Position numbers and translations under genes: made by a program
Shown here: positions 3,837-47,265 of the stretch, piece after piece
Layout of the letters: the number at the start of each line of letters is the position of its first letter
Numbering within the stretch: the first letter of the stretch is position 1
Source of the DNA: Malacoraja senta
Lineage: Eukaryota
Reading direction: 5' to 3'
NCBI GenBank assembly: GCA_038087875.1
Contig: JAXLNO010002960.1
Location: 186,001 to 233,265 of the forward strand
DNA: 47,265 nt
The notes under the pieces: model-generated
The model's database searches: none
What the model saw: only the letters and a program-made list of their open reading frames with translations
Told to the model about the DNA's origin: nothing

Positions 3837-3975
3837 AATAGTTGCACATCAGATTAGACAAGTTAGGAAGAAGAACGTGTCCAACATTGTAGATTCAATT
3901 GCGGAGTTCAATTACTTCAGGCATATATATATGCTAGGCGCCGCTGTTATAACCATATAACCATATAACAATTAC

Positions 3976-4735
3976 AACAATTTTGGTTGTTGAGTAGAGC
4001 AACTACTCGTGAATAAAAAACTGCTGTGACAGTCCGGAGACGCCTTCCAGAGGGTAGTGATTTAAATAGTTTGTGGCCAGGGTGAGAGGGGTCAGAGATG
4101 ATCTTACCCGCTCGCTTCCTGGCCCTTGCAGTGTACAGTTCATCAATGGAGGAAAGGTTGCAGCCAATAACCTTCTCTGCTGATCGGACGATTCGCTGCA
4201 GCCTCCAGGTGTCGTGCTTGGTGACTGAGCCAAACCAGACCATGATGGGGATGGTGAGAACAGACTCTACGATGGTCGTGTAGAATTGGACCATCATTGC
4301 CTGTGGCAGATTGTGTTTCCTCAGCTGCCGCAGGAAGTACATCATCTGTTGTGCCTGTTTGACTGTGGAGTCCGTGGTAGCCCCCCACTTATGGTCCTTG
4401 GAGATGATGGTTCCCAGGAACTTAAAAGATTCCACAAATGTGACTGTGGTGTTGTTGATGGTGAGTGGGGTGAGGGGAGGGGGAGCTCTCCTAAAGTCTA
4501 CAATCAATTACACTGTCTTAAGAGAATTGAGCTCCAGGTTGTTGCTACGGCACCAGGACGCCAGCTGTGACACTTGATGTCTGTAGGCCGATTCCTCCCC
4601 ATCCTGGATCAGTCCAATCAGGGTTGTGTTGTCCGCAAACTTGAGAAGCTTGACTGACAGAGGTGAAGTCGTTGGTGTAGAGAGCGTAGAGGAGAGGAGA
4701 AAGTACGCAGCCTTGTGGTGCTCCTATGCTGAGTG
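3976..4735 (-). mobile_element. Rex1/Babar LINE 3' fragment
   Basis: ORF 3947-4507: MIVDFRRAPPPLTPL...FKFLGTIIS...YFLRQLRK...LPSGRRLR; upstream LYALYTND/KFADD-like remnants. Confidence 0.85.
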
Positions 4736-5214: not shown

Positions 5215-5742
5215 TGTGAGAAAGGGGTTAATAGGTATAAGTTGATTTAGACAAGAACCCTTTGTATAGTAGGGAGGATAGGGGGAGTGAAGGACGAGTA
5301 CAGATGGTGACTTTTTCAAGGATGAGAACAGAGAAGATAGCAACAGCCCAGCCAAGAACTGGGGTAAGGGTCAGGAGAAACACTCTGTGCGCATGGGCAA
5401 TGAACTTACACGAATATGTACACACACCCACTATGACAAGATGTCTCATTTAAATGCACATGCGATGCATGATATGGGAGGTGTCTTTGACGTCGGGTGG
5501 ACGTTCCATGACGTTCTCGTGGGAATGTGGGCTTTATGTTATGATTGGAAGAAGCACAATGGGGAGGGATGAGGGTGTGACAATGATACCCATGAAATGT
5601 ATAAAGATAGAAGTCATCCCGATCCTCGGTGTGCCTCTAGGGGACATCAGAGGAGAGGCACCTATTCTGCAGAATATGATTTGAATAAAAAGCTTCTTTG
5701 ACGACTTTGTCTCTAAAAGCGTTTGTGATTTTGAATCTCACA
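5215..5742 (+). repeat. ERV 5' LTR (528 bp)
   Basis: tgtgaga...tctcaca inverted ends; tataaa at ~5600; aataaa 5684-5689; direct repeat of 10806-11349. Confidence 0.93.
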
Positions 5743-5747
5743 ATTTT

Positions 5748-5766
5748 TGGGGGCTCGTCTCGGGAC
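5748..5766 (+). promoter_or_regulatory. Primer-binding site complementary to tRNA-Pro
   Basis: tgggggctcgtctcgggac versus the canonical MLV-type tgggggctcgtccgggat, 5 nt after the LTR. Confidence 0.85.
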
Positions 5767-6129
5767 CCCCACTCCGGCTGGCTGACGACGGTATACAGAA
5801 GAAGGGACGGTGCACCCCGTTGATTTTAACGGTCCCAGACCCCTAGATTGCCGTCAGCGGTTTGGGCGAGTGGTATCCCTGAACAGAGACTTAGCAAAGA
5901 AGTGGGAGTAGTTGGAAATCCGATCGGGAGGAAGATCGGGGGAAATTCGCGAAGGAGCCAAATCGAGTGATTCTTGTGTACAGGACCCGGGTAAGAAAAC
6001 TGACTATTTACTACTCGGGCGATTGGGATAAGACCTTGTGGATACCGCCCTGAAGAATTCAGGGGTCTGTACGGGCAAGGCAGGAAAATGGTGGGAAAAT
6101 AGATCGGGGGGGAAATTCCGATCGGGAGG

Positions 6130-7790
6130 ATGGGCCATGAGAACGGAAAGCCCACCAGGGAGGGGAAGGGCGGTAAGCCCGACCCCAGCATTCTGCCTGA
6201 TAGTCCGTTGAGGCGAATGCTGAGCCTCTGGGGGCAGGGAAATACCCAGGGAATTGGAGGACAAAAATGATTGAGCCTCTGGGGGCAGAGAAATACCCAG
6301 GGAATTGGAGAAGACAAAAATGATTTGATTCTGTTATTTTGAGTTTTAATACATGTAAAAGATGTTGCATTTATTTGAAGTAAGAATGGAACGAATGTGA
6401 TTTGTGTGTAAAAACCGGTTTGGAATGAAAGAGGAAGTTTATATATGTGATAATTATTTTGTTTATTGTATTTGTAGACCACATTGGAAGAGTAAGTAAG
6501 TACGTTTTATTAAAATCAAAAATGTTCACTGTAGGTAGGTGTATGTTCCTTTAAATAAATCAGGTCATGGTGAAAGGCGCCGAACAGCTGTAAGATAACG
6601 ATTAATGTTTGTATCCTTGTAAGAAGGGGAAGTTGTGAAACCAGCTTTTGGTTTTTCTGATGTTCTTTTTAGATTTCTAGTCAGTAAAGATAATTTGGAA
6701 AATTGTTACTAGTGCTAGGAATTGAACATTTAAAATAGTGGTGAATATGGATTGAAATAATTGGAAATAAGTTAATTGGTAAACATTCAAGTTTAGAAAG
6801 AAAGGAGAGAGAGGCAGTTAGAAGATAACAGAAGTAGAAAAACGACAGGCGTGAAAGTAATAAAGCAGGAGGAGTCAGTGGAAGATTTTTGCAAGGAGGC
6901 TAGAATATTTGAGAAGCAAGAAATTGAGTTTAGAATTAGAAAGAAGGCATACCAGAAAGGATTAAAGTTGGAAGCATTGGGATAAAGTGATGAGACTGTT
7001 TTAAAGAGAAAAGAGAAGGACAGACACGGATTATCCCTTGGGGCACCCATAAACTGAAAGGGCTAAAAAATACCTCACCCTATATCCCTGATGGGGGAGG
7101 AAATGGATTAGGGCTTTGGAGGAGGAGAACGTGGGACGATTATTGATCATGGAAGATTTGAAGGCACTGTTGGTAAAAGTGATAGGAACCACTAAAGTGA
7201 CAGAACTACTGAAGATGGATGGTATAAACTGATGCGAACAATGTAACAAGCAATGGCATACTGTTTGCCACAGTCAGGCAGAGGGTATGGCAGACCCTCA
7301 GACAATGTTACCCACTTAAGAGGAACCCCAAGGAACAAGGGGAGATACAGAAGGAAAGGCAAATAGCCTATCTGGAAAACCAGCTGAAAAGGTGGAGAGT
7401 TGATTGATGAACATTATATTATGAACTACTGTGGTGGATGTCATTCTTCTTAAAGTCAAGCAGATTCAGCGAACAGTTGGTCTCTGCGGTCGAGAAATAT
7501 CGCAAAGATAGGAAAAAGATTTGCAAACCAGCAGGAGGAGGTGTTGTCAATAAACAATGGACCTAAGTGAGTCCTATGACGGAACCAAGCAGGGCCAGAG
7601 AATTACATGCCAATAATGAATGTCTTTGGGGTACGTTTCCTCAAAAAGTCCTATCAGGAGTGAAATTAATCTGGATATAAGCCCTAACAGGACTGGGGTC
7701 CCCAAGAGAGAAAGGGATTTAAGGGAGGATTTGTTGGTATTGTTCCATAAGTAACAAGCGATGTAAGAGAGAGAGAGAGAGATTTAAAAA
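6130..7790 (+). pseudogene. gag: Fragmented gag (MA N-terminus, capsid remnant, decayed zinc knuckle)
   Basis: MGHENGK...ILPDSPLRRMLSLW (MA-type); RKWIRALEEENVGRLLIMEDLKALL (~7110-7170, capsid-type); GRICWYCS (~7720-7750); many stops and deletions. Confidence 0.65.
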
Positions 7791-7879
7791 AAATACTTCA
7801 GAATGTAGGACAGAGAATGATAACCTCGGGAAAAGGCAGGATATAGTTCAGACTAGATTAGGTATAAGCCCTGTAGTGT

Positions 7880-8430
7880 CGTTTATGATGAATAAGGTAA
7901 TTAAGAGGTTTGGTAGACGTACAGAAATCAGCTTTGACAACGGATTGTTTTCATTTAGGGAGTAGCTAAGTTGGCGATAGAGACCCTTAGAGTAAAATAC
8001 ACATTTGGGTATGTAACACCTGCAGTCACAGGCATGGTGGAAAGAATAAATGGAACATTGAAGGTTAATATAAATAAGATTTGTTTAATTACAAAGTTGA
8101 ATGGGATCGATGACCTGCCATTGGCACTGAAGAGATGTTGCATGCAAACTAACCGAGCAGGTGGCACAATGGAGAGGTCCCTACAAGAGACCGAGTTTGG
8201 AACAGTTAAAGATAGAATTTAAAAAGTATATGAAACAGTTAATTATGATATACAAGTCTATTTACGAACAGGAAAAGTAAAAGCTGTTGGAGGTGGACCA
8301 GGAGGAAGGACCCTTTAAACCTGAAGACAAGGTGTATGTATGAGTTTTCTAAACTACCGACCGATGTTCAGGTAGAAGGTTGATATACCTGGTACCATTT
8401 CAATAATACCTGAGGGCTGTCCCGCAGGTA
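7880..8430 (+). pseudogene. pol: Integrase remnant A (core plus C-terminal domain, fish epsilon-like)
   Basis: VIKRFGRRTEISFDNG; GMVERINGTLKVNINKIC; SLEQLKIEFKKYMKQL; PFKPEDKVYV*VF; PTDVQVEG*YTWYHFN. Confidence 0.8.
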
Positions 8431-8514
8431 TGAATAGATAATAGCCCTGAGGTAATTGAACAGGAGGACAAGAGATGTGAGAAAAGAGTAGAGTTTGAAC
8501 AAGAACGTTGTTTG

Positions 8515-9478
8515 ACATCAGTGGTGGGCAAAATAATGGAAAGCATACTTAAGACAATATAAGAATTTGGATAAATAGGGTAGGATTAGGAAGAATTAGC
8601 ATGGATTTGTGATTGTGATGTTTGACTAATCTTGAATTTTTTGAAAAGGTTATTAGGGAAATTGATGAGGGTAAAGTGATGGATGTTGTCTAGATGAACT
8701 TCAGTAAGGCCTTTGACATGGTTCAATAAGGAAATAAGGTTGGTTAAGAAGGGTTAGTAAGGAATAGCAAGATGGATTAAAAAGTGGCTGTATGGGAGAT
8801 GTCAGAGAGCAATGGTGGATGGATGTTTGTCAGGTTGGAGGTCAGTGACTAGAGGGGTACCTCGGGGATGTGTGTTGGGTCCACTGTTGTTTGTCATGTG
8901 AATCAATAATCTGGATGTTGGTGTGGTAAAATAGATTAATAAGTATGTAGATGATAATAAGATAGGTGGTGTTGTGAATAATGAAGTAGATTTTAAAAAG
9001 TGTACAGAGAGATTTAGGTCATTTGGAAGAATGGGTTGAAACATGACAGATGGGTTTAATGTTGATAAGTGTGAGGTGATACATCTTGGCAGGACAAATC
9101 AAAATTGAATGTACATGGTAAATGATTGTGAATTGAGGAATGAAGTTGAATAGAGGGATCTAGGAATAACTGTGCATGGTTCCCTGAAGGTGGAATTTCA
9201 TGAAGATAGGATGGTAAAGAAAGATTTTGGTGTGTTTGCCTTTATAAATCAGAGCATTGTGTATAGAAGTTGGGTTGTAATGTTAAATTGTACAAGGTAT
9301 TGGTGAGGTCAATTGTGGAGTATGGTGTATAATTTTGGTAGGCTTAATTATAGGAAGGATGTCAACAAAATAGAGAGAGTACAGAGGAGATCAATTAGAA
9401 TGTTGACTGGGTTTCAGCAACTAAGACACAGAGAAAGGTTGAACAAGTTAGGTCTTTATTATTTAGGAACGATAGAAG
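8515..9478 (+). mobile_element. Heavily mutated CR1 RT fragment inside the ERV
   Basis: SVVGKIMESIL, DVV*MNFSKAFD, RGVPRGCVLGPLLFV, KYVDDNK (YADD-derived), RLNKLGLY. Confidence 0.85.
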
Positions 9479-9853
9479 GGGTCCCAACAAATACAAGGGA
9501 ATGATGTATTCCTAAGGAACTATTTACTGGCAGTATCTCGTTCTCTTACAGAATTAAGAACCAAGGGGCTGCTGGCACAGAGTCCCCATCTCGACTTTCC
9601 AATCCATTCTGTGAAAGCGGGGGACTGGGATCTTGTAACATCATGGAAGGAAGAAAAGCTGCAACCTAAGTGGACTGGACCCTACCTGGTGTTACTAATC
9701 ACCGAGACAGCAGTACGAACAAAAGAAAAAGGGTGGACACACGCAAGCCGATTTAAGGGTCCTGTGGAGGCCCCACCAAACAATATCAGCCCGTGGACTG
9801 TGCGCAAAGGAGAGGAACCATTGACTTTAATATTTAACAAGAACCCGCGGTAA
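9479..9853 (+). pseudogene. pol: Integrase remnant B (linker plus C-terminal GPY domain)
   Basis: FLRNYLLAVSRSLTELRTKGLLAQSPHLDFPIHSVKAGDW...PKWTGPYLVLL...GWTHASR; near-identical to 43384-43688. Confidence 0.88.
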
Positions 9854-9855
9854 AA

Positions 9856-10765
9856 ATGAAGATTTCGTGTTGGTGGGTCGTGTGTTGGGTGGTTACCCAA
9901 CTATGTAAGCATACAGAGTGTTCAAATGCAGGAAAGTGGAAGGATGTGCAGATAGAACAGGGAGAATGAGCCTAAGGATTTGAAGATAATGATAGTAGCA
10001 GGAGAAACAGAATTAAGGCAATTATATGAGGAGGGAATACCTACAGGAGGGAAGGGAGCCAACACCTGGCTTGCCTGGATCATGTACACGGCCAGGAGTA
10101 TGCAACACACCAATTGCTACGCCTGTGCCGGAGCTAAGCCTCAGCTGGTTCCAGAACCATTTCCCTTGAATTGGGATAGGACACCTGGGGCTATGTCATG
10201 TATACTACAGCTATTCACGAATCCCATCCTACCAAAGGATGCGACCTGCCAGAGTTATCATTACCTACTCCCGGCTAGCAACAACAATACAAAGGGCCGA
10301 AGGACAGACCCTTCGACACACACATATATATAGATGCGATAGGGGTGCCAAGAGGGGTACCCGATGAATTCAAAGCCAGAAACCAGATAGCTGCGGGCTT
10401 TGAGTCCATACTCTTCTGGTGGTCCACACTTAATAAAAATGTGGACTGGATCAACTACCTATACTACAATCAACAACGCTTTATAAATTACACTCGAGAT
10501 GCGGTTGAAGGATTAGCGGAACAACTGACAGATACCAGCCTAATGGCCTGGCAAAATCGCATGGCCTTAGACATGCTACTGGCTGAGAAGGGAGGGGTGT
10601 GTGTAATGTTTGGGGAACAATGTTGCACCTTCATCCCCAACAACATTGCTCCTGATGGGTCAGTATCGAGAGCCCTAGCAGGTCTCACCTCCCTGTCTAT
10701 CGAATGAGAGGAAGATAGAGAGAGGCGAAGATTCTGCTGCTAGCATTAGAGAAGGGGCAGATAGT
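9856..10765 (+). pseudogene. env: Internally deleted env
   Basis: Signal peptide MKISCWWVVCWVVTQL, NCYAC (CXXC), ISD QNRMALDMLLAEKGGVC, CX6CC; several deletions relative to the 41435-43383 copy, including the TM anchor. Confidence 0.9.
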
Positions 10766-10805
10766 CTAAATCAAAGATTGCAGTAGCAATAGTAAAAGTG
10801 TGGAT

Positions 10806-11349
10806 TGTGAGAAAGGGGTTAATAGGTATAAGTTGATTTAGACAAGAACCCTTTGTATAGTAGGGAGTATAGTAGGGAGGATAGGGGGAGTGAAGGACAA
10901 GTACAGATGGTGACTTTTTCAAGGATGAGAACAGAGAAGATAAGGAGACCGTCCAGGATAGAACTAGGGTAAAGGTCAGAAGAAACACTCTGTGCGCATG
11001 GGCAATGAACTTACATGAATATGTACACACACCCACTATGACAAGATGTCTCATTTAAATGCACATGCGATGCATGATATGGGAGGTGTCTTTGACGTCG
11101 GGTGGACGTTCCAGGACGTTCTCGTGGGAATGTGGGCTTTATGTTATGATTGGAAGAAGCACAATGGGGAGGGATGAGGGTGTGACAATGATACCCATTA
11201 AATGTATAAAGATAGAAGTCATCCCGATCCTCGGTGTGCCTCTAGGGGACATCAGAGGAGAGGCACCTATTCTGCAGAATATGATTTTGAATTAAAAGCT
11301 TCTTTGCTGACTTTGTCTCTAAAAGCGTTTGTGATTTTTGAATCTCACA
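10806..11349 (+). repeat. ERV 3' LTR (544 bp)
   Basis: Direct repeat of 5215-5742, preceded by a degenerate PPT aaaagtgtggat; attaaa at 11291-11296. Confidence 0.93.
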
Positions 11350-11600
11350 ATGACCATGGCTGACGTTCCTCAGGCATCAACTCCTGTTCGGTGCCAGTTC
11401 CTCATTGCACTCAATTCTCCAATCTTTCAAAAGTTTAACTACCGCCATATTAAATACTTCCAATGATTTTGTCTTCACAAATCTCTGGCGCCAGAGAATG
11501 ACCACACTCTGCAAAAAGAGATTTTGTAAACAAATGACTGGTCTCTTTTATCTCTTATTGAAGAGGAGTGAAAATACGGCCAATTTTAAGCTTGTCCCCT
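11350..11600 (-). mobile_element. Degenerate CR1 3' end
   Basis: atgaccatggctga... and accacactctgcaaaaag match the reverse CR1 tail also seen at 39088-39400. Confidence 0.5.
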
Positions 11601-20246: not shown

Positions 20247-23200
20247 TTATGTTGTATGAAAGTGTTCAATAAATTTTCCCCAAGTCTTATCAAATTTAAC
20301 CAAGGGTTCAACAATGTCACTTCTGATTTTTTCTAAATTTAAACATGATATCGTTTCAGAGTACCACTGGAGTGTGGTCGGAGGGTTGGAATCTTTCCAT
20401 TTAATGAAAATAAATCTTCTGGCAATTAATGTGGTAAAAGCAATCAACCGATGGGCGGAGAGGGACAAATGAATAGAATCTAACATTGGTAACCCCAAAA
20501 TTGCAGTAATAGGATGAGGTTGTAAATCTATACATAAGACTACCGAAATAGTATGAAAAATGTCTTTCCAATATTTTTCCAAAAGAGGGCAGGACCAAAA
20601 CATATGGGTCAGTGATGCCACTTCAGAGATACATCTGTCACAGGTAGGATTTATATGACCATAGAAATGAGCTAACTTATCTTTTGACATATGAGCTCTG
20701 TGAACCACCTTGAATTGTATCAAAGTGTGTCTTGCACACATTGAAGAGGTATTAACTAATTGAAGGATCCTCTCCCATTTCTCTATAGATAAAGACATTT
20801 GGAGTTCTCTTTCCCAGTCATTATTAATTTTATCAAATGTATCTATTTGTAATTTTAAAATCAACATGAATAGTCGTTATTAATCCTTTCTGATAAGGGT
20901 TCAACTGTAAAAAAAAATCCAAAATTTCGGGTTGATGTGGTAGCGGAAAAAGAGGTAGTTCCTTTTGTCTAATTTGTAAATATCTAAAAAAGTGTGAATT
21001 AGGTAAATTATATTTATTGGAGAGTTGTTCGAAAGACATAAAACAACACTCCAAAAACAAATCACGAAAAGCTACTAATCCCTTCCTCTTCCATAACAAA
21101 AAAACTTGATCAGTACTAGATGGTTGGGAGAGAAATTTGGATAAAATCAGATAGTCCAAAAAACTTATGAAATTGAAACCGTATTCGGAACGTATGTCTT
21201 ATTATTGGGTTCGTCATATATTTATTCAATCTCGTAATTGTAAAAGGTAACGAGGTCCCTAGAATAGAAGCCAATTATAGCATTGGGTATCTTCTAAATC
21301 TTTTGTCCAAAATGTTAAATAACGAACATTGATTGCCCAATAGTAGAGTCTAAGGTTCGGCAATGCCAAACCACCAACTTTTTTTGATTTCTGTTGGTAT
21401 TTTTTACCTAGTCTGGCATTTTTATTCTGCCATATATATGAAGAAATTTTAGAGTCTATAATATCAAAGAAAGATTTGGCAATAAAAATTGGTATCGTCT
21501 GAAATAAATACAGAAATTTAGGTAAAATGAACATTTTAATAGCATTGATTTGGCCAATTAAGGATAAGGACATTGGTGACCATTTAGTGAACTGATGTTT
21601 AATATGGTCAATTAAAGGAATAAAATTAGCTTTAAATAAATCCTTGTGTTTCTTGGTGATCTTAATACCTAAATAAGTAAAACTTTCAGTAGTCAATCTA
21701 AATGGAAACGGTCCATAACTCAAAACAAAATTATATATTGGGAAAGCTCACTCTTACTAAGATTTAGTTTATAACCAGAAAAACTACTGAATTGATTAAG
21801 TAATGCTACTATTGCCGGAATAGATTTCTCAGGGTTAGAAATAAATAATAACAGATCATCTGTATAAAGAGATAGCTTATGTGTCTTATTCCCGCGGACA
21901 ATACCAAAAATATTAGGGGATTCCCTAATAGCAGTGGCTAAAGTTTCCAAAGCAATATCAAATAGTAAAGGACTTAAGGAACAGCCCTGTCTAGTACCTC
22001 GAAAGAGCCTGAAAAAAGGGGATCTCTGATTATTAGTAAATACAGAAGCCTGAGGTTTAAGATATATCAGTTTGATCCAAGAGATAAATTTTGGACCAAT
22101 CTTAACTTTTTCAAGTATATTGAATAAGTATTCCATTCTACTCTATCAATAGCCTTCTCGGCATCAAGTGAGATGACACATTCTGGGGTTTTATTAGACG
22201 CTGTATATACAATATTTATTAGTCTCCTAACATTAAAGAATGAGTAACGATTTTTAATAAAACCTGTCTGATCTTCGGAGATAATTTGCGGTAAAATCTT
22301 TTCCAATCTCATAGGTAATATTTAGGAACTAATTTTCAAATCTACATTTCACATTGATATAGGTCTATATGATGTCACTTCAGTAGGGTCTTTATCTTTT
22401 TTTAAATTAAAGAAATAGAAGCTTCATAAAAAGATTGTGGTAATCTATTCCTTAAAAAGGCATCTTTAAATACCTTGCATAGCCATGGAGACAATACATT
22501 TGAGAAATACTTTAAAAATTCTACTGTAAACCCATCTAAACTGGGAGCTTTACCAGAATTCATTGAAAAAATTGCTTTCTGTATTTCTTCTTCCGTGATG
22601 GGTTCATCTAACAACAGAGACTCATTGTATGGTAAATTTGGTAAGTTCAGTTTCTTTAAAAACTCATGCATTATATTGGAATCAGTAGGAAAATCTGATT
22701 GGTATAGGGAGGTATAAAATTCCTGAAAGGATTTATTAATTTCGTCATGGTCTACAGTTACTGTACCATCCCGTTTACTCACTTTAGTAATCTGACTCTT
22801 GGCCGACACTGCCTCAATTGATTAGCAAGTAATTTACCAGATTTATCGCCATTTATATAAAATGGACTTTTGGTTTTAAGTAACTGGTTCTCAATCGGTG
22901 ATACTAATAACAAATCATATCTCAATTGAAGTTCAACTCTATTCTTATAGAGCTCTAAACTAGGAGTTTTGAATATTTTTTATCAATTTCTTTAATCTCG
23001 TCAGCCAATGTGCGTATTTCTTTTTGTGTTTGTTTTTTTAATCCCGCGGAGTATGAAATAATTTGTCCACGAATATATGCCTTAAAAGCATCCCAAACTA
23101 TACCATTGGATATCTCTTCATTAGAGTTTGTCAAGAAGTAAAAAGCAATCTGATCTTTCATAAACTTAATAAAGTTTAAGTCTTGAAGCAAAGTAGCATT

Positions 23201-23520
23201 AAATCGCCATTGTTTAGCACTAAACTTGGAATCAGGTAGTTTGATCAATAGTTTCACTGGTGCATGATCAGAAATAGCAATTGTATCATACTCACATGCA
23301 ATGACGAATGGAACTAGCCGAGAATCTAGTATAAAATAGTCGATCCTAGAATAACTATGATATACATGAGAGAAAAATGAAAATTCTTTGTCGTTTGCGT
23401 GTAAGAATCTCCAAATTTCTAACATTCCCGAGTCAAGTAAAAAAGAATTAATAAAATTAGCTGATTTATTTGGAAGCACATGATCAGATGTAGATCTATC
23501 AATCGAGGGATTCAAAAAGC
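20247..23520 (-). pseudogene. L1 ORF2 remainder (endonuclease C-terminus, RT, C-terminal Cys region)
   Basis: YSRIDYF, SDHAPV, GKAPSLDGF, QTGFIKNR, SLDAEKA, GTRQGCSLSPLLF, LYTDDLLL, CDRC...HMFWSC; several frameshifts. Confidence 0.9.
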
Positions 23521-25886: not shown

Positions 25887-26770
25887 TCAAAAATGACCAA
25901 CATGCTTTCTCAGTGCCTGTTCTTTAATTCTCTGCAGCTGTTGATAATGTAATGGTCCAAATTGAACTGCTGGGAATGCTGCTACTAATTTTCCCAGTAC
26001 ACGAGCCACCTGTCTAATTGAAGGTTTTTGCTCGTTTAGTAGATTACTGCAATCTTTAATCAAATCCACCTTTTTCCCTGGGCAAAGTAATATTCATTTG
26101 GACTGAATCAATTGTAAACCCCAAATAATTAATAGAGGTACATGGTGTTAACCTAGATTTCTTTGGATGAATTAGAAACCCAAATTTTTAAAAGTTGATT
26201 TCACAACTGCAACAGATGCTTCTGTTGACTGTTTTGTCTTTCCTATAATCAAGACATCATCCAAATATGCCATGAGTACATGCCCCTGGCTTCTCAGCAA
26301 ACCCAGAATTGGTTTTAACAATTTTGTGAATATTCTGGGTGCAGATGTTAACCCATTAGGCAGAGCTTTGAACTGCCACAACTGGTTCATCCATTTAAAT
26401 TTAAGATACTTCCTATCTTCTGAATGAACAGACACTGAATAATATGCATCTTTCAAGTCTATAGTTGCCATATAACATGCTTCTGAAATAAGCTGTTTGG
26501 CAGTCACAAATGTTTCCATTTTAAAATGTCTAAATTGCACAAAAGGATTCAGATTTGTCAAATCTAGAATAATCCTACATCCTCCATCCTTTTTTGATCG
26601 AGGGAATATATTTCACACAAATTGGTGACTTTGGTAGACTGATTTTTTCAATAACCCCTCTTTTTTATATAGGGTTTCAAGTGCAACCTGAACCTCCATC
26701 ACTTCTTTTTGTACAAAGTGCAGAGTTCGGCTAGGAACATGCTGAACAGGCAAATCATAATTTGGATTGA
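25887..26770 (-). pseudogene. DIRS reverse transcriptase (broken)
   Basis: FKMET, IDLKDAYY, ALPNGLTSAPRIFTK, AYLDDVLI. Confidence 0.9.
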
Positions 26771-26772
26771 AT

Positions 26773-27870
26773 TCAATTCAAAATCCTTGTATATGATTCA
26801 GGATTACCACATTCTGAAGTAATTTTCTTCCAATTATTATAAAAGAAATGTAACCTGCCTCCAACTTTTGGACTTAATCCAGTTAGTATGTTCCCATGAG
26901 AACCAGGTTCACCTACCTCTTGAGTCATTTGAGTACCCTGAGATTCCTGGGTTCTCCCGGAAGCACGCCCACTGGTTCTTGCTCCCGCTGCAGGCCGCCA
27001 ACTACGTCCCTGCGTTGATGAGCGACTTGGTCCAGGATCCGTATGACGTCTGAAAGGATACTTCCTCTTTACAGACTTCACAACCATTGATGTCTTCATC
27101 AATCCTGTTTTCGCTTCATCTTCCAACTCTTTAATATGTCTCCCGAGATCCTCTCCAAAGAGTAAGTTGGGTAATTGTATATTACTTGGTTTGCAGAGTG
27201 CTGCGAATTTTGGATTCATAGTAGGCCGTATCACACTTTTCCTCAGACAATTGTCTCGAAGTGGGTGCTGCATAGCAACCCCAGTGTTTCCTGATGCAAC
27301 TCCGTCATCTCTTGGCTTTTTTCTGCTATTCTTGCAAAAGCAGTTATTCCAGAACCCAACAGCTTTAATATTCTCTGCAACTGATTCCAGATAATTTGAT
27401 TCACTGCTGCCCACAGTTACTTCTTGCAGTCTCATCCATTTCCTGCTGTTCCAGCTAATGGTATACCAAGTAATTTATTAAGGAGGCCAGTTCTTCTTCT
27501 AATGGCTCTCCTGACCCTGACGGGGCAGCGAATCCTACTGCCAGGAGTGGAACATCTGGCAGCTGCCGTTCATCGCCTTGTACAGCCTCACCGTCAGAGT
27601 CGGGGTCTGAAATCTCATGACCCGTAGCACGCTCCTCTTCCTGAGGGTGCATTCCATCAGCCCTGAGCCAGGTGCTGTTAAGCTGCTCCTGCAGCTTGGA
27701 TTACAGTGCACTCCTTCCTGAGTGAACTTTGCTCCAACAGCCTATGTAAAAGACTTTCTATTTGGGCAACATGCTCGAAAGCAGTATCTAGCCCTGTACC
27801 AGGAGCTGTTTGAGCTGTTTCCAGCAGCTTGCTTTCAGTACACTCCTCCCCGAGTGAACTTTGCTCCAAC
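26773..27870 (-). pseudogene. DIRS ORF1 (gag-like) remnant
   Basis: Located upstream of RT; NPKFAALC...LLFGEDLGRHIKEL; stops and frameshifts; ~132-bp internal duplication at 27720/27852. Confidence 0.55.
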
Positions 27871-36039: not shown

Positions 36040-36680
36040 ACATTAGTCTCCGATGACCTCTCTTGGACCAACAATACCTCAACTCTGGTCAAGAAGGCTC
36101 ACCAGCGTCTCTTCTTCCTGAGGAGACTAAAGAAGGTCCATCTGTCTCCTCGGATTCTGGTGAACTTCTACCGCTGCACCATCGAGAGCATCGTTACCAA
36201 CTGCATCACAGTATGGTATGGCAACTGCTCTGTCTCCGACCGGAAAGCACTGCAGAGGGTGGTGAAAATTGCCCAACGCATCACCGGTTCCTCACTCCCC
36301 ACCATTGAGTCTGTCCAAAGCAAGCGTTGTCTGCGAAGGGCGCTCAGCATCGCCAAGGACTGCTCTCACCCCAACCACAGACTGTTTACCCTCCTACCAT
36401 CCGGGAGGCGCTACAGGTCTCTCCGTTGCCGGACCAGCAGGTCCAGGAACAGCTTCTTCCCTGCGGCGGTTACACTACTCAACACTGTACCTCGGTGACT
36501 GCCAATCACACCCCCCCCCCCCCCCGGACACTCCTCCCACCAGGATTTATTAGATTTATTTATTTACTGCTCATATTTATGTCGCTCTTCTAGGGAGATG
36601 CTAACTGCATTTCGTTGTCTCTGTACTGTACACTGCACAATGACAATAAAGTTGAATCTGAATCTGAATCTGAATCTGAA
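36040..36680 (+). mobile_element. 5'-truncated Rex1/Babar LINE (young, intact 3' ORF)
   Basis: ORF 35983-36498: KKAHQRLFFLRRLKK...LLPSGRRYRSL; tail aataaagt(tgaatc)n; same family as 1447-2993. Confidence 0.92.
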
Positions 36681-39945: not shown

Positions 39946-40886
39946 CTGCTGCGAATTTTGTTTGTATTTTCTGATTTAAATCAAAGATGTTGGTATAGAT
40001 ATGAGTTCCATGTTTAGGAAATGTGTGAATGTCAGCAAAGTTGTTTGCAGGTGTAGTATTAGGCAAGATGTAAACTGCCTTGACATTCAATAACATTACC
40101 AAGCTAACTCCTCCGCCATCAATCTCTGTTCCAATAATAATTGAATCACCGTCTTTTTGACCAGACAGTAGGACTCGCGTGAACTTGGAAGCTGCAGGGA
40201 AAATGACTAATTTGGACTGGTGTTACTTTTGGCCACTGAATGGAAGATTATAATCATTTTCCTCTGGACGGTGGAATCAACACCCTTTCGCTTTCCAAGC
40301 GGGCAATTAGTGCTGTTCTCCCTTTGAAATCTACCGTGTAAAAATAGCACCTGCAGATCAAGATCCAAATTGACCGCCATTCTGATTTGGAAATATGTCC
40401 TGATCCTCAGTATTGCAAATGCCGAATCGCCCCACGCCGACAGAATATTGTACTGGCGCATGGAGGTCTTCAGCGGTGGGAAAAAAAGATGGCTCTTCAC
40501 TGTAGATGAAATGTGCATGTACCTTTAACATAGTGACCTCACCACTACTAACCACTCCCCACATCACTGGTATAATTACAACCTTCCCACCCAGTTCTCT
40601 CTCTCTCTAGTTCCAGTGACAGACCACGGACAGCTAGGGCAGCAATAAACAGTAGTAACGATACAGTGCATTATGACCCATCATTACATTCACCACGTAG
40701 TCAAAGGCAAAAAGGAAATGTTAATACAACCTTGCTACCTGCTTAAAATAAACACTGGGTGTTGCAATCGCTAGATACAACGTGTTGGTTTATTATTGAC
40801 ACGGGTAACTAGATACAGTGAAAACCCCTTTGCGTGGTATTCAGCCAAATCATACTATGCATGAATACAATTAAGCCATACATAAG

Positions 40887-41439
40887 TGTGAGATGCAAAA
40901 TCACAAACGCTTTTAGAGACAAAGTCGGCAAAGAAGCTTTTTATTTAAATCATATTCTGCAGAATAGGTGCCTCCTCTGATGTCCCCTAGAGGCACACCG
41001 AGGATCGGGATGTCTTCTATCTTTATACATTTCATGGGTATCATTGTCACACCCTCATCCCTCCCCATTGAGCTTCTTCCAATCATAGCATAAAGCCCAC
41101 ATTCCCACGAGAACGTCCCTGGAACGCCCACCCAACGTCAAAGACACCTCCCATATCATGCATCGCATGTGCATTTAAATTAGGCATCTTGTCATAGTGG
41201 GTGTGTGTACATATTCATGTAAGTTCATTAGGCATGCACAGATTTGTTTAACCTTATGTACTTTCTCTCTTTCTACTTCTCAAATCTTCTGCTGAATTTG
41301 CTACTTTTTATCTAGAATTTCTCTCTGTTCTATATATCGTTATTTTCTATTTTACCAGCAGTCTGGCTTCTGCTGACACCACAAGCCATTTTTCTATCCC
41401 TAATATAAATCAACCATGTCTGTTAACTCTTTCCTCACA
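40887..41439 (-). repeat. ERV 3' LTR (553 bp)
   Basis: tgtgag...tctcaca; 3' ~340 bp match the LTRs at 5215 and 10806; preceded by PPT aaaaaagaaaagggtggat (41440-41458). Confidence 0.93.
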
Positions 41440-43383
41440 ATCCACCCTTTTCTTTTTTGCTACGCAACCTTTGATTTATACTATCTTCCTTTTCTAATGC
41501 TAGCAGCAGATTCTTCGCCTCCCTATCCCCCTCTCGTTGGTTATACTGTGTTCTGAAGGCCATCATGGTGGCGGCCCTGTTCTTTGTCAGGGCTGTTTCT
41601 ATCAATCGCTGAGCCAATCCCCGTACGCAGGGAATCATACAACATCCGAACAAACACAGTAACCCCACCATGACTACCACTGATGTTAGAGCTGAGGTAA
41701 AGATGTGCTTCCATTTCCCAAACCAGGATTATAGAAACCCAGTCCAGGAGTTGTCTACTCCAGAGTTCTCAGCCAATTCGATAGTCAGAGAGGTGAGACC
41801 TGCTAGGGCTCTTGACACTGACCCATCCGGAGCAGTGTTGTTGGGGATGAATGTGCAACATTGTTCGCCAAACATTACACACACCCCTCCCTTCTCAGCC
41901 AGTAGCATGTCCAAGGCCATGCGATTTTGCCAGGCCATTTGGCTGGTAGCTGTCAGTTGTTCCGCTAATCCTTCAACTGCATCTCGAGTGTAATTTATAA
42001 AGCGTTGTTGATTGTAGTATAGGTAGTTGATCCAGTCCACATTTTTATTAATTGTGGACCACCAGAAGAGCATGGACTCAAAGCCCGCAGCTATCTGGTT
42101 TCTGGCTTTGAATTCATCGGGTACCCCTCTTGTCACCCCTATCGCATCTATATATATATGTGTGTGTCGAATGATCCTTTCACCCCTCTCTTTTGTTGTT
42201 GGCTTCCTTCATTGAGTTCTACAGCATGTTCTACTGCTATGGTGAAGGGCATCATCAGTTGTGTGAGGGTACAGGTTCCCGTCCATGACCCCAGTAACCG
42301 GGGCCACAGGGTATTCTCCCCGCACCACCACCAGACATCGGCTCTACTGACTATCTGTTTTTTTAGCCAGGAGCTATTGAACAGTGGTCCCTGTTCCTCA
42401 GCCGTTATGTTATACGTCTGATTGCAGTTGAGCACCTTCCCCATATCCTGTCCCTCTGGGTTATTTCTTGTATAGCACTCAAACCCCTCCTCCCCAAGAG
42501 GACTGGTAAATGGAGGAGGTCGAGGGTCTTCCCTTCGGCCCTTCGTATTGTTGTTGCTGGTCGGAAATAGGTAATGATAACTCTGGCATATCACATTCTT
42601 TGGTAAGAGGGGATTCGTGAATAGCTGTAGTATACATGACATAGCCCTAGGTGTTCTATTCCAATTCAGGGGAAATGGTACTGGGACCAGCTGAGGCCTA
42701 GCTCCGGCGCAGGTGTAACAATTGGTTCATTGCATACTTCTGGCTGTGTACATCATCCAGGCAAGCCAGGTGTTGGCTCCTTTTCCCCCTGTTGGTGTTC
42801 CCTTCTCATATAACTGCCTTAATCCTGTTTCTCCTTCTACTATCATTATCTTCAGATCCTTAGACTCATTCTCCCTGGTGACTTTGCTGACTACCGGTGG
42901 TGCTGGTGTTGCCCCGGGATCCCTATTCTGACTGTCATCTATCTTCAACACCTTTCCCCTATCCTCATATCTTACCATCTCCCCATCCCGCTTCACTTCT
43001 ATCTCAAACTTCAGACACGTGTCCTTCCCTGTTTTATCTGCACATATCCAATACCTACCACTTTCCTGCATTTGAACACTCTGTATGCTCACATATATAC
43101 GTCCTGGCAATTTCTCGTTCGGGTTTTGATATATTTTCCACCTATCAGTTTGATAGGTGGTTCGATGCCACCCATATTTTGATGAAGTAAACACCGCGTG
43201 CCAATTTCTACTGGGATGGGTGCATACATACATTCTATAGCCACACCACCATTTTCTTTTACATACATTAAATGGGATGGTGGTGGGCCTTCTATTCTGT
43301 GGTATTGTGATTTTTATACATGTTATATTACTCACGAGTTGGGTAACCACCCAACACACGACCCACCAACACAAAATCTTCAT
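41435..43383 (-). pseudogene. env: Gamma-type env, ~650 codons, three point lesions
   Basis: Signal peptide, NCYTC (CXXC), QQKR cleavage-site position, ISD WQNRMALDMLLAEKGGVC, CX6CC, TM VVVMVGLLCLFGCC; lesions: TGA 42727-42729, +2 in (TA)n 42149-42159, TAA 41729-41731. Confidence 0.93.
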
Positions 43384-43688
43384 TTTCCCGCGGGTTCTTG
43401 GTAAATATTAAAGTCAATGGTTCCTCTCCTTTGCGCACAGTCCACGGGCTGATATTGTCTGGTGGGGCCTCCACAGGACCCTTAACTCGACTTGCGTGTG
43501 TCCACCCTTTCTCTTTTGTTCGTACTGCCGTCTCGGTGATTAGTAACACCAGGTAGGGTCCAGTCCACTTAGGTTGCAGCTTTTCTTCTTTCCACGTTTT
43601 TATTAATACCCAGTCTCCAGCCTTGACTGAGTGTATCGGGAAGTCCAGTGGTGGGCTCTGGGCCAGCAATCCTTTAATTTTTTGTTCT
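43384..43688 (-). pseudogene. pol: Integrase C-terminal domain remnant
   Basis: KGLLAQSPPLDFPIHSVKAGDWVLIKTWKEEKLQPKWTGPY...GWTHASRVKGP. Confidence 0.9.
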
Positions 43689-43979
43689 ATATCATGCATC
43701 GCATGTGCATTTAAATTAGGCATCTTGTCATAGTGGGTGTGTGTACATATTCATGTAAGTTCATTAGGCATGCGCAGATATGTTTGACCTTATGTACTTT
43801 CTCCCTTTCTACTTACTCCTCAAATCTTCTGCTGAATTTGCTACTTTTTATCTAGAATTTCTCTCTGTTCTATATATCGTTATTTTCTATTTTACCAGCA
43901 GTCTGGCTTCTGTTGACACCCCAAGCCATTTTTCTATCCCTAGTCTAAATCAACCATGTCTGTTAACTCTTTCCTCACA
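43689..43979 (-). repeat. Truncated LTR (U3 part only)
   Basis: Matches ~41150-41439 with a few percent differences; PPT at 43980-43998; breaks at gcatgatat. Confidence 0.9.
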
Positions 43980-44394
43980 ATCCACCCTTTTCTTTTTTGC
44001 TACGCAACCTTTGATTTATACTATATCCTCCTTTTTTAATGCTAGCAGCAGATTCTTCGCCTCCCTATCCCCCTCTCGTTGGTTATACTGTGTTCTGAAG
44101 GCCATCATGGTGGCGGCCCTGTTCTTTGTCAGGGCTGTTTCTATCAATCGCTGAGCCAATCCCCGTACGCAGGGAATGATACAACATCCGAACAAACACA
44201 GTAACCCCACCATGACTACCACTGATGTTAGAGCTGAGGTAAAGCAGTGCTTCCATTTCCCAAACCAGGATTCTAGAAACCCAGTCCAGGAGTTGTCTAC
44301 TCCAGAGTTCTCAGCCAATTCGATAGACAGAGAGGTGAGACCTGCTAGGGCTCTTGACACTGACCCATCCGGAGCAGTGTTGTTGGGGATGAAT
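43980..44394 (-). pseudogene. env: Second copy of env 3' end (TM anchor open)
   Basis: FIPNNTAPDGSVSRALAGL...GFLESWFGKW...GLLCLFGCCIIPC; GAA at 44271-44273 where the other copy has TAA. Confidence 0.9.
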
Positions 44395-44440
44395 CGCCCG
44401 TTCACACACGCGCGGGTGGAGGGCGTGCGTGTGTGCGGGC

Positions 44441-44743
44441 ACACAATACTTCATGTGTGGTCTCACCAGGGCCCTGTACAACTGCAGAAGGACCTCTTTG
44501 CTCCAATACTCAACTCCTCTTGTTATAAAGGCCAACAGGCCAAAACTGCACACAATACTCCAGGTGTGGTCTCACCAGGGCCCTGTACAACTGCAGAAGG
44601 ACCTCTTTGCTCCAATACTCAACTCCTCTTGTTATAAAGGCCAACAGGCCAAAACTGCACACAATACTCCAGGTGTGGTCTCACCAGGGCCCTGTACAAC
44701 TGCAGAAGGACCTCTTTGCTCCTGTACTCAACTCCTCTTGTTA
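44441..44743. repeat. Tandem array of a 109-bp CR1-derived unit (~2.8 copies; continues at ~46093-46195)
   Basis: Units start at 44441, 44550, 44659; the reverse strand encodes the CR1 [12 protein letters not shown] motif. Confidence 0.88.
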
Positions 44744-46093
44744 TTCAGATTCAGATTCAGATTATTTAATGACCACACAGTCAAGCTGGTGGAATTCATG
44801 TTCAGTACAGGATGTTACACAATAGGCTGATTCCTGTCAAACATAACATAAAACACAACAACATACAGTATACAGTACATGCACGAGGTGGCTGTGTGAT
44901 GTTGTCATAGAGTGTTCAGATTTCGAATTGCATATGGGTAGAAACTGTTTTTAAGTCGTGATGTTTTGGCGGGCAGTGAGCTGTAGCGCCTTCCTGACGG
45001 CAGCAGGAGGAAGATGTGGTGAGCTGGGTGGGAGGGATCAGAAATTATTTTATTCACCCTTGACACAGACCGTTTGAGATTGAGTGATTCAATTGATGGG
45101 AGGGAAGTGCTGATGATTTTGGATGCTTTGTTGACAATGCGCTGTAGTTTATTACGGGAGTGAGTGTCTAAACTGCTGTACCAAACTGTTATTGATGAAG
45201 TGAGCATGCTTTGGATGATGGCTGTGTAAAATCGGATTAGGAGATGTTTCCTCACTCTGAACTTCTTGAGCTGACGGAGAAAGAAAAGTCTTTGGTTGGC
45301 TTTTTTATAAATGTGATCTGAATTGATTTTCCATTTGAGGTTATTGCTTATGTGAGTGCCAAGAAATTTGAATGAGTCAGTGGTGGATATGGGTTCGCCA
45401 GAGATGAGTAGGGGGGTCTTGGGTTGTGCCTTACGTCTGAGATCAATGATAAGTTCATGTGTTTTTGATGTGTTGAGTAGGAGGTTATTATCTGTTTTGT
45501 TTGTTTGAGTGCGGTATTCTGTTTCGTTGTTGTTAGAGATGAGACCTATGATGGTTGTGTCATCTGCGTATTTATATATTTTGACTGAACTATACTGGGA
45601 TGTGAGTTGATTTGTGTAGAGTGAGAATAACCAGGGTGACAAGACGCAACCCTGAGGGGCTCCTGTACTGAGGTGCAGAGGGTGAGATATGGTGTTATGT
45701 ATCTTCACCCTCTGTTGTCTGTTCCAAAGGAAGCTATAGATCCAATGACAGACGCAGGGGTCAATGTTCATGTCCGTTAATTTATGGAAAAGTTTGACCG
45801 GGTTGATGGAGTTGAATGCCGAACTGTAGTCCATGAACAGGATGCGGGCGTAAGTGTTGGCGGTTTCCAGGTGTTGCAGAGTGTGATGGATGGCCAGGTT
45901 GACTGTGTCTTCTACTGACCTGTTTTGCTCTATATGCGAATTGATGTGGGTCCATGTTGGAGGAAGTGCTGGTTTTGAGTTGAGCGAGAATAATGCGCTC
46001 AAATGACTTCATGGCCACAGATGTAAGGGCAATCGGTCTGTAGTCATTGAGGCAGGATGTTGTGTTAGACGTGGGCACAGGAATGATGGTGGA
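44744..46093 (-). mobile_element. 5'-truncated Rex1/Babar-clade LINE, nearly intact RT
   Basis: ORFs 45782-46078 and 44905-46002: [40 protein letters not shown]; one frameshift; tail aataatctgaatctgaatctga. Confidence 0.93.
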
Positions 46094-46289
46094 TTATGAA
46101 GGCGAACAGGCCAAAACTGCACACAATACTCCAGGTGTGGTCTCACCAGGGCCCTGTACAACTGCAGAAGGACCTCATTGCTCCTATACTCAACTCAATC
46201 TCTGTTTTCTTTAGTGGCCTTTCCAAATAAAATGAAAACATATTTTACACTTTGTGGACACCTTGATGTTTGAATTATGTTCTTCAACC

Positions 46290-47006: not shown

Positions 47007-47040
47007 ATAAAAGCGCTGTCATGCAGCGGGAGGCAGCAAT

Positions 47041-47265
47041 GCAGCCAGTGATGCATGCATTCCCTTTAATGCAGCCAGTGATGCATGCATTCCCTTTAAT
47101 GCAGCCAGTGATGCATGCATTCCCTTTAATGCAGCCAGTGATGCATGCATTCCCTTTAATGCAGCCAGTGATGCATGCATTCCCTTTGATGCAGCCAGTG
47201 ATGCATGCATTGCCTTTAATGCAGCCAGTGATGCATGCATTCCCTTTAATGCAGCCAGTGATGCA
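47041..47265. repeat. 30-bp minisatellite (>=7.5 copies, runs off the window)
   Basis: Unit gcagccagtgatgcatgcattccctttaat, only two variant positions seen. Confidence 0.97.

Follow-up and report, generated by a model that had tools for sequence, protein, structure and literature searches.

Has a retrovirus recently taken up a host immune-receptor domain, or does its envelope protein carry an older likeness? The question is raised by an endogenous retrovirus (ERV) env gene in a 47,265-nucleotide stretch of the Malacoraja senta contig JAXLNO010002960.1 (positions 186,001 to 233,265; this whole stretch is called the window here). A reading made from the letters alone (the sequence-only reading) had picked out positions 42994-43317 on the minus strand, which are residues 23-130 of the env frame starting at 43383, as bearing the signature of a CD300/pIgR-like immunoglobulin (Ig) V-set domain. 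It had proposed either that the virus had grafted a host V domain or that the lineage keeps an unusually Ig-like version of the gamma-type receptor-binding domain (RBD). Our analysis indicates that the segment is, in all likelihood, the RBD of the surface subunit (SU) of a defective gamma-type ERV Env that is present twice in the window, and that this RBD belongs to the RBD-C class (EnvP(b)1/ERV-Fc-like) and probably has an IgV topology. The V-set words are common to the family, and would therefore have been inherited rather than freshly grafted. All the words that had been quoted are present in the translation, with the Pro-rich stretch at residues 155-165.

The gene carrying the segment, the env of ERV copy B, encodes an SU consisting of an N-terminal RBD, a Pro-rich hinge and a C-terminal domain (C-domain) with a CXXC motif; it also encodes a furin-type site and a transmembrane subunit (TM) with a CX6CC motif. 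The segment lies within the RBD (42979..43329). Pfam TLV_coat matches both the SU C-domain and the TM pieces, and in a PDB search the TM piece matched the TM subunits of syncytin-1, syncytin-2, HERV-T and murine leukaemia virus (MLV). Because of these TM matches, together with MLVIN_C upstream and TLV_coat downstream, this env is classed from its sequence as gamma-type. Comparison with an intact relative revealed two in-frame stops and one frameshift. The conserved CXXC that had been placed after the linker is readable in copy A and in the relatives, but in copy B it falls outside the open piece that holds the N-terminal domain. The Pro-rich hinge is also found in the relatives, and the hydrophobic N-terminus, a predicted signal peptide, is kept in P0007, P0008, P0012 and P0013.

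Searches with the single sequence did not recover any V domain. At E<=10, Pfam placed neither the open env piece, nor the domain alone, nor its close relatives in any Ig family, and none of them gave a match to V-set (PF07686), whose gathering threshold is 26 bits. The phmmer search of the PDB with the window domain, also at E<=10, returned noise and no Ig chain, though the PDB is rich in V domains. Hence the check that had been suggested, HMMER with the window domain alone against Pfam V-set/Ig and the PDB, found no V-set profile match. In Pfam V-set domains the B- and F-strand Cys stand about 65-75 residues apart, the second within D-x-G-x-Y-x-C; in the window copy this Cys is displaced by one residue. 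Run by phmmer against 1.84e9 (1.84 billion) representative proteins, the segment found no host protein; its only matches were a nearly identical ERV fragment and two repeat proteins from bacteria, P0002 and P0003. The two bacterial proteins were discarded as spurious, since their scores are summed over repeats. A profile built from a shallow close-family alignment (A1) gave 0 matches in the PDB, and jackhmmer, seeded with the window RBD, converged without leaving its own family.

The family became visible with deeper sampling. About 25 open reading frames (ORFs) in an index of 5.8 billion proteins, all about 89% identical to the window copy, have the same N-terminal domain; these close relatives lie in the Logan assemblies made from three sequencing runs. 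The wider search, with the longer relative P0019 and then with a 20-sequence profile, extended the set to over 280 gamma-type Envs, found in sharks (Chiloscyllium, Heterodontus, Scyliorhinus, Mustelus), teleosts, amphibians, birds, primates and a marsupial; NCBI names many of them 'FC1 Env-like', 'BabFcenv-like' or 'PABLB member 1 Env-like'. Their N-terminal regions were cut about 50 residues before the CXXC and clustered. The hidden Markov model (HMM) of a cluster of 23 sequences matched residues 23-134 of the window domain at 19.9 bits (best of 2000 shuffles, 11.8) and the relative P0013 at 25.9 bits (best of 2000 shuffles, 13.1), and hhalign joined the window subfamily to this cluster over 113 columns (97.7%, P 1.5e-12). 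Aligned directly with a primate relative, the subfamily gave only 61% and P 8e-5. The same HMM matches 115 of the 224 Envs that were fetched, the primate ones at 103-106 bits. Closer RBD relatives are P0174 (43 bits), whose contig encodes gag-pol-env, and P0199 (28.5 bits), which bridges to the big cluster at 49 bits. A teleost-rich N-terminal group, g0, linked weakly to the window subfamily (P 1.3e-3) and was dropped.

The gene call of P0199 (L007:2833-3000) starts at an internal Met, and the frame stays open for about 56 codons further upstream. With this extension the protein gains a signal peptide as well as strands A and B, and its Pfam V-set score rises from 14.3 to 17.4 bits (E 0.005), which is below threshold, as are the Ig_CD22 match of the same RBD (E 0.02) and the V-set match of P0213 (14.5 bits).

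The link to a solved structure was provided by a nine-sequence profile made of the window copy, one close relative, P0174, the full RBD of P0199 and five members of the big cluster. Searched against the PDB, profile positions 6-128 matched the inferred RBD of EnvP(b)1, 6W5Y, with E 2e-21 and 79 bits. 6W5Y has an IgV topology (PMC12051499), and the RBD-C classes, including Pb(1) and Fc, have been described as IgV-like and devoid of the B-F disulfide (Hotzel 2024, bioRxiv 10.1101/2024.03.17.585361). It is mainly because of the homology to 6W5Y that we assign a probable IgV fold to the window domain.

Which of the V-set words belong to the family can be read from the columns of the alignment, counted at the positions of the window copy among the 23 relatives of the big cluster. 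C41 recurs in 18 relatives (all ungapped), and Y52, C54, W61, W72, G119 and F126 in 17 each; Y111 is found in 15, R81, I100, G109 and I128 in 14 each and D121 in 11. At the column of S58, 17 relatives have Cys, and at that of E107, 17 have Asp. Both the window domain and the family have the D-strand Arg of V-set type, the acidic residue before the F strand and the G-x-Y. In V-set domains this Arg and the acidic residue form a salt bridge. The V-like features common to the family are thus a B-strand Cys (C41), an aromatic-x-Cys in the C strand, the D-strand Arg (R81), a hydrophobic pattern in the E strand, D/E-x-G-x-Y ahead of the F strand, a G-x-D turn and F-x-I-x-V in the G strand, and because of these column shares we regard the D-, E-, F- and G-strand words as real conserved features of the family.

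Other parts of the proposed signature had to be revised. RKWWC, which had been read as the C-strand motif, is not conserved, since the close relatives differ at its second W, and alignment to a true V-set relative puts the aromatic-x-Cys of the C strand at Y52-V-C54 and not at W45-W46-C47. Four residues past C54, at residue 58, the window copy has Ser and the close relatives have Cys. Where the canonical F-strand Cys would stand, the window copy has Ile and 15/23 relatives have Leu, so that the canonical B-F disulfide is absent. C114, one position further on, had been taken for the shifted F-strand Cys, probably wrongly: the column is Gly in 19/23 relatives, and C114 co-occurs with C123. Neither C123 nor C22 is Cys in any of the 23. 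P0174 has both C114 and C123 and P0199 has neither; P0199 carries instead the D-E-loop Cys pair of the family, which the window lineage does not have. Because the two residues co-occur across lineages, C114 and C123 most likely are a lineage-specific pair that would staple the F-G hairpin as a local disulfide. The words said to survive in the deleted copy at about 9902-9962 both exist there, but in two different reading frames.

Structure prediction pointed weakly in the same direction. AlphaFold2, given the shallow close-family alignment, produced a best model that is all-beta with about 10 strands (predicted local distance difference test, pLDDT, 53.5; predicted template-modelling score, pTM, 0.46). 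The top 50 Foldseek matches of this model in the PDB were almost only V domains (nanobodies, heavy-chain V domains, PD-1, TIGIT, CRIg), with template-modelling scores of 0.45-0.53. For the fold, the model is weakly supportive at most. The single-sequence prediction of the whole first open env piece (pLDDT 38.9) was unusable, and Foldseek against BFVD was uninformative, returning generic phage Ig-like matches and walleye retrovirus Envs (template-modelling scores 0.29-0.36).

An intact protein of this kind would carry an IgV-topology beta-sandwich at the SU N-terminus, then the Pro-rich hinge and then the CXXC C-domain, whose CXXC would be disulfide-linked to the CX6CC of TM. On the model of MLV-type Envs, loops at one end of the sandwich would have bound a cell-surface receptor; binding would have been relayed to the C-domain, where the CXXC/CX6CC bond would have isomerised, and TM would then have refolded and fused the membranes.

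The likeness to CD300/pIgR, claimed for the window copy, reappears at another level. After EnvP(b)1, the top PDB match of the nine-sequence profile was pIgR (E 8.2e-5), accompanied by CLM-1/CD300f (E 3.3e-4, 3.4e-4, 3.5e-4, 0.0025 and 0.0075), the best of these aligning profile positions 25-127 with residues 22-108 of a chain of 113. Lower in the list were the secretory component (0.006) and CMRF35-H (0.085); VNAR, titin, CMRF35-H and antibody V domains had E of 0.013 and above, and antibody, T-cell receptor and VNAR domains ranked below CD300/pIgR. With the four-sequence profile of the subfamily, CLM-1 was already the best natural match (E 0.056), aligned from the D strand to the G strand. 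From four to nine sequences its E fell from 0.056 to 3.3e-4; the signal therefore grows with the depth of the profile, and it points to CD300/pIgR. The family as a whole has, by these profile matches, a weak but significant likeness to CD300/pIgR-type V domains, and the label given by the sequence-only reading is valid at family level but not for the window copy alone, whether by Pfam, the PDB or phmmer. In other words, V-set likeness exceeds chance for the family profile and does not do so for the single sequence. An ancient host source for the RBD-C class would be in keeping with this likeness.

An Env with a genuine V-set head was found in the same group. The N-terminal domain of P0194 is above the Pfam V-set threshold, at 30.2 bits when the full protein is scored and 35.8 bits when the domain is scored by itself, and it clears the I-set threshold too. 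It has the canonical B/F Cys pair, and the CXXC C-domain and a gamma-type TM follow it directly, with no Pro-rich hinge; the gene lies directly after an integrase gene. In the PDB, P0194 has weak matches to MXRA8, pIgR, PD-L2, LAIR1 and TREM-1. No V-set head on CXXC-bearing Envs was reported in the survey of Hotzel 2024. In similarity to the C-domain of the window family, the C-domain of P0194 ranks third of 203. Among the 224 fetched proteins, the head of P0194 and the window subfamily each have the other as best non-self match, with a Smith-Waterman z of about 5 and, in hhalign, P from 7e-4 to 2e-6 depending on settings (scores 26-39, shuffle maximum 17); against the nine-sequence profile the head gave 72% and P 3.3e-5. 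The subfamily HMM scored P0194 at 12 bits and CLM-1 at 16.7 bits, and the 23-sequence HMM did not match P0194. A neighbour-joining bootstrap tree of the C-domain gave 22%, 13.5% and 0% for the three groupings tested, leaving it unresolved. Support for the P0194 head as the specific sister of the window RBD is thus mixed, and P0194 may either have kept an ancestral V-set state or have captured a host V domain independently.

Several observations weigh against the assignment of the segment to an RBD-C domain of IgV topology. Searched by itself, the window sequence gave no match to 6W5Y or to any V-set profile. Little confidence attaches to the structural model, given its pLDDT and the scores of the other four of the five models (30-35); no Foldseek match to the PDB reached an E of 0.001 (all at least 0.02), and no retroviral RBD was among the top 50. 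The pairing of C114 with C123 is deduced from co-occurrence in very few lineages. The pIgR match is a sum of weak matches to several Ig domains, with no single stretch passing, and receptor binding by the loops and membrane fusion by TM are both argued by analogy only.

The other ways to explain the segment have to be set against this. Had an ERV ancestor of this lineage replaced or extended its RBD with a host CD300/pIgR-like V exon, the motif order and spacing, which resemble those of CD300f, would be accounted for; capture of a host IgV by Env has a precedent in the SIRP-like RBD of some mammalian alpha-like Envs (Hotzel 2024), and P0194, with its similar C-domain and V-set head after an integrase, indicates that such Envs exist in the group. 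Such a graft is nevertheless hardly credible here: no host protein came up for the segment, Pfam V-set matched neither window copy nor the close relatives, and the canonical B-F Cys pair is not intact, while the domain aligns end to end with Env RBDs from sharks to primates and has in common with them private features, namely the Cys cluster (C41, C47, C54 and the column of residue 58), W61 and W72. The host graft that had been put forward for this lineage accordingly gives way to homology of residues 23-134 with a widespread Env RBD family. The likeness might, conversely, be fortuitous, arising in a fast-evolving RBD unrelated to V-set in which motifs were picked after the fact. All single-sequence tests being negative, the supposed C-strand motif not being conserved, the F-strand Cys being off by one and the structural model being of low confidence would all fit this explanation, which we still consider very improbable, given that the CLM-1 signal grows with added sequences, that the top non-retroviral matches are almost only CD300/pIgR in an antibody-dominated PDB, that the family includes a solved IgV-topology structure (6W5Y, PMC12051499) and that the hhalign scores against the Pfam-positive V-set of P0194 lie above the shuffle maximum.

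Another alternative is that the RBD came from a different Env lineage, perhaps one like P0194 with a canonical V-set head, through recombination within env. Transfers of RBDs between Env groups have been described (Hotzel 2024); compared with its nearest C-domain relatives the window Env is less than 20-25% identical in the RBD and 36-42% in the C-domain, and the reciprocal best match with P0194 would agree with such a swap. Against it, P0174 is the closest relative by C-domain and by RBD, as vertical descent predicts, the subfamily profile scores P0194 no higher than CLM-1 and so gives it no special closeness, P0194 goes unmatched by the family HMM and the tree is unresolved; we judge the swap unlikely. 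The inherited RBD-C domain stays our preferred explanation, and it is close to the second proposal of the sequence-only reading: an Ig-like gamma-type RBD kept by the virus was essentially right, except that the trait belongs to the family, as the 23 relatives show, and is nothing special to this lineage. That family of Env RBDs had already been described as IgV-like (Hotzel 2024; PMC12051499).

Where the class itself came from is a separate matter. The host origin of RBD-C has been called unknown (Hotzel 2024), and the paper on the EnvP(b)1 structure makes no mention of CD300 or pIgR. It is possible, though we would stop short of calling it probable, that the whole RBD-C class descends from a captured host CD300/pIgR-type V domain, with the window family, P0199 and P0194 as sequence intermediates. 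If this were true, these three would show the CD300/pIgR ancestry of RBD-C at the sequence level for the first time. Studies of retroviral Envs have not settled the origin of the gamma-type RBD; a defined candidate donor family would allow it to be tested through structural comparison and a V-set phylogeny. The window alone carries little weight in this respect, as it adds one more cartilaginous-fish-type member of a known Ig-like RBD class, in dead proviruses.

The features of the two ERV copies, and P0194, are collected in Table 1. Copy B has no gag and none of the remaining pol. Its integrase fragment is 91% identical to positions 9570-9902 of copy A, and its 3' long terminal repeat (LTR) shares 95% identity with the copy A LTRs across some 347 bp, with a weaker match at the LTR start. 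A 700-bp block, made of the env 3' end and the first part of the LTR, stands at 41153-41852 and again at 43689-44394 in direct orientation with 97% identity, and flanks the integrase fragment and the env 5' part; because of this duplication, copy B is taken to be a rearranged or partly duplicated fragment and not a simple provirus. The LTRs of copy A (5215-5744 and 10806-11351) are 94% identical to each other, and its interior is heavily deleted. Large internal deletions have taken out most of the RBD from the env of copy A, which has at least one frame change, keeps the CXXC motif and the TM ectodomain, and covers 232 of the 623 residues of the intact relative used as yardstick. With stops and a frameshift in copy B and large deletions in copy A, env is dead as a fusogen in this genome.

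Table 1. Positions of the two ERV copies and their parts in the window, and of the Env P0194
Feature	Position	Strand	Source or evidence
ERV copy A, same family as copy B	5215..11351	+	Self-comparison, ORFs
env remnant of copy A	9856..10805	+	tblastn with the env N-terminal piece; ORFs
3' LTR of copy B (approximate bounds)	40884..41434	-	Self-comparison with copy A LTRs
env gene of ERV copy B, gamma-type	41435..43383	-	ORF pieces and translations, Pfam, PDB matches
Pro-rich hinge between RBD and SU C-domain, residues 155-165	42889..42921	-	Translation
RBD, RBD-C class, residues 19-135	42979..43329	-	Family HMM, hhalign, profile against PDB
Predicted signal peptide, residues 1-18	43330..43383	-	Hydrophobic N-terminus in translation; cleavage site inferred
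C-terminal integrase fragment of pol, overlapping the env start	43328..43723	-	Pfam MLVIN_C, E 4.8e-11
Second env 3' end and 5' part of LTR, directly upstream of the integrase fragment (97% identical to 41153-41852)	43689..44444	-	Self-comparison; TM-tail ORF
P0194, gamma-type Env of 554 amino acids with CXXC and CX6CC	L004:1006-2670		Logan sample ERR6050764

Between the window copy and two contigs from other samples, the RBD has a ratio of nonsynonymous to synonymous rates (dN/dS) of about 0.3. This value fits purifying selection in the past, though it comes from small counts (9-10 synonymous differences, 13 nonsynonymous). Contigs L001, L002 and L003 of the three runs, with proteins P0004-P0021, have env ORFs of the family that end early at recurring points, and in L001 a pol ORF exceeds 960 codons. 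Given this pol ORF, the species behind these runs may express the family, or the family may be a young one.

The surroundings of both ERV copies are rich in repeats, and no host gene was recognised in the window. Remnants of non-LTR retrotransposons lie, all on the minus strand, at 3947-4507, 20247-23515, 26172-27435 and 44905-46002, and carry RVT_1 reverse transcriptase, zf-RVT and a short ALKBH8_N-type motif. Beside the duplicated env fragment there is a tandem repeat with a unit of about 109 bp (44439-44746), which recurs at 46094-46209, and at the window end a 30-bp unit is repeated (47038-47265), which in one frame reads as the same 10-residue peptide over and over. Two copies of a dispersed repeat (about 600 bp, 87-90% identity) are present at 2236-2993 and 36047-36668, the first of them broken by a run of N at 2729-2860.

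Among known systems, the RBD of EnvP(b)1 (ERV-P(b), 'PABLB'; 6W5Y, 'RBD-C Pb(1)') is likewise an N-terminal SU domain placed before a hinge and a CXXC C-domain. It has an IgV topology without the canonical B-F disulfide, and the window domain also lacks the canonical F-strand Cys; unlike the EnvP(b)1 family, the window lineage has no D-E-loop Cys pair and has the new pair C114/C123. The RBD of ERV-Fc/BabFc-type Envs ('RBD-C Fc', Hotzel 2024) is compact and IgV-like, without the long VRA/VRB loops, which fits the roughly 115 residues of the window domain; the comparison is made through the 'FC1 Env-like' and 'BabFcenv-like' relatives, and the domain could be of either the Pb(1) or the Fc type. 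The RBDs of MLV and feline leukaemia virus (FeLV) (1AOL, 1LCS; 'RBD-C Type-C') occupy the same place, with the same presumed role, in a gamma-type Env and have an Ig-like scaffold according to the literature. They have roughly double the length, carry large VRA/VRB insertions and have one more strand at the N-terminus, and no sequence or Foldseek match connected them with the window domain.

The captured, SIRP-like IgV RBD found in alpha-like ERV Envs of mammals (Hotzel 2024) is also an Ig V-type domain at the SU N-terminus; domains of that class are BLAST-similar to the host donor and keep the B-F disulfide, and their Envs have no CXXC, none of which is true of the window domain. With CD300f/CLM-1 the window domain shares, from the D to the G strand, the Arg, the E-strand pattern and the Y-W before the F-strand Cys column, as well as the turn K-T-G-x-D and a G strand with alternating hydrophobic residues. 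Unlike CD300/pIgR, the window copy has Ile at the F-strand Cys, no Pfam V-set membership and no match when searched alone. The second disulfide of CD300/pIgR joins the C and C' strands; in the window copy a Cys follows the C-strand aromatic residue (Y52-V-C54), and Ser58 stands where the relatives have Cys. The open piece of the copy B env, finally, consists of a signal peptide, the RBD and the hinge and stops before the CXXC, like the soluble RBD fragments of FeLIX/Refrex-1 type. Antiviral truncated Envs with this arrangement of signal peptide, RBD and hinge have been described (PMC9245640), and the shape of its ORF is what makes the truncated window piece resemble these products.

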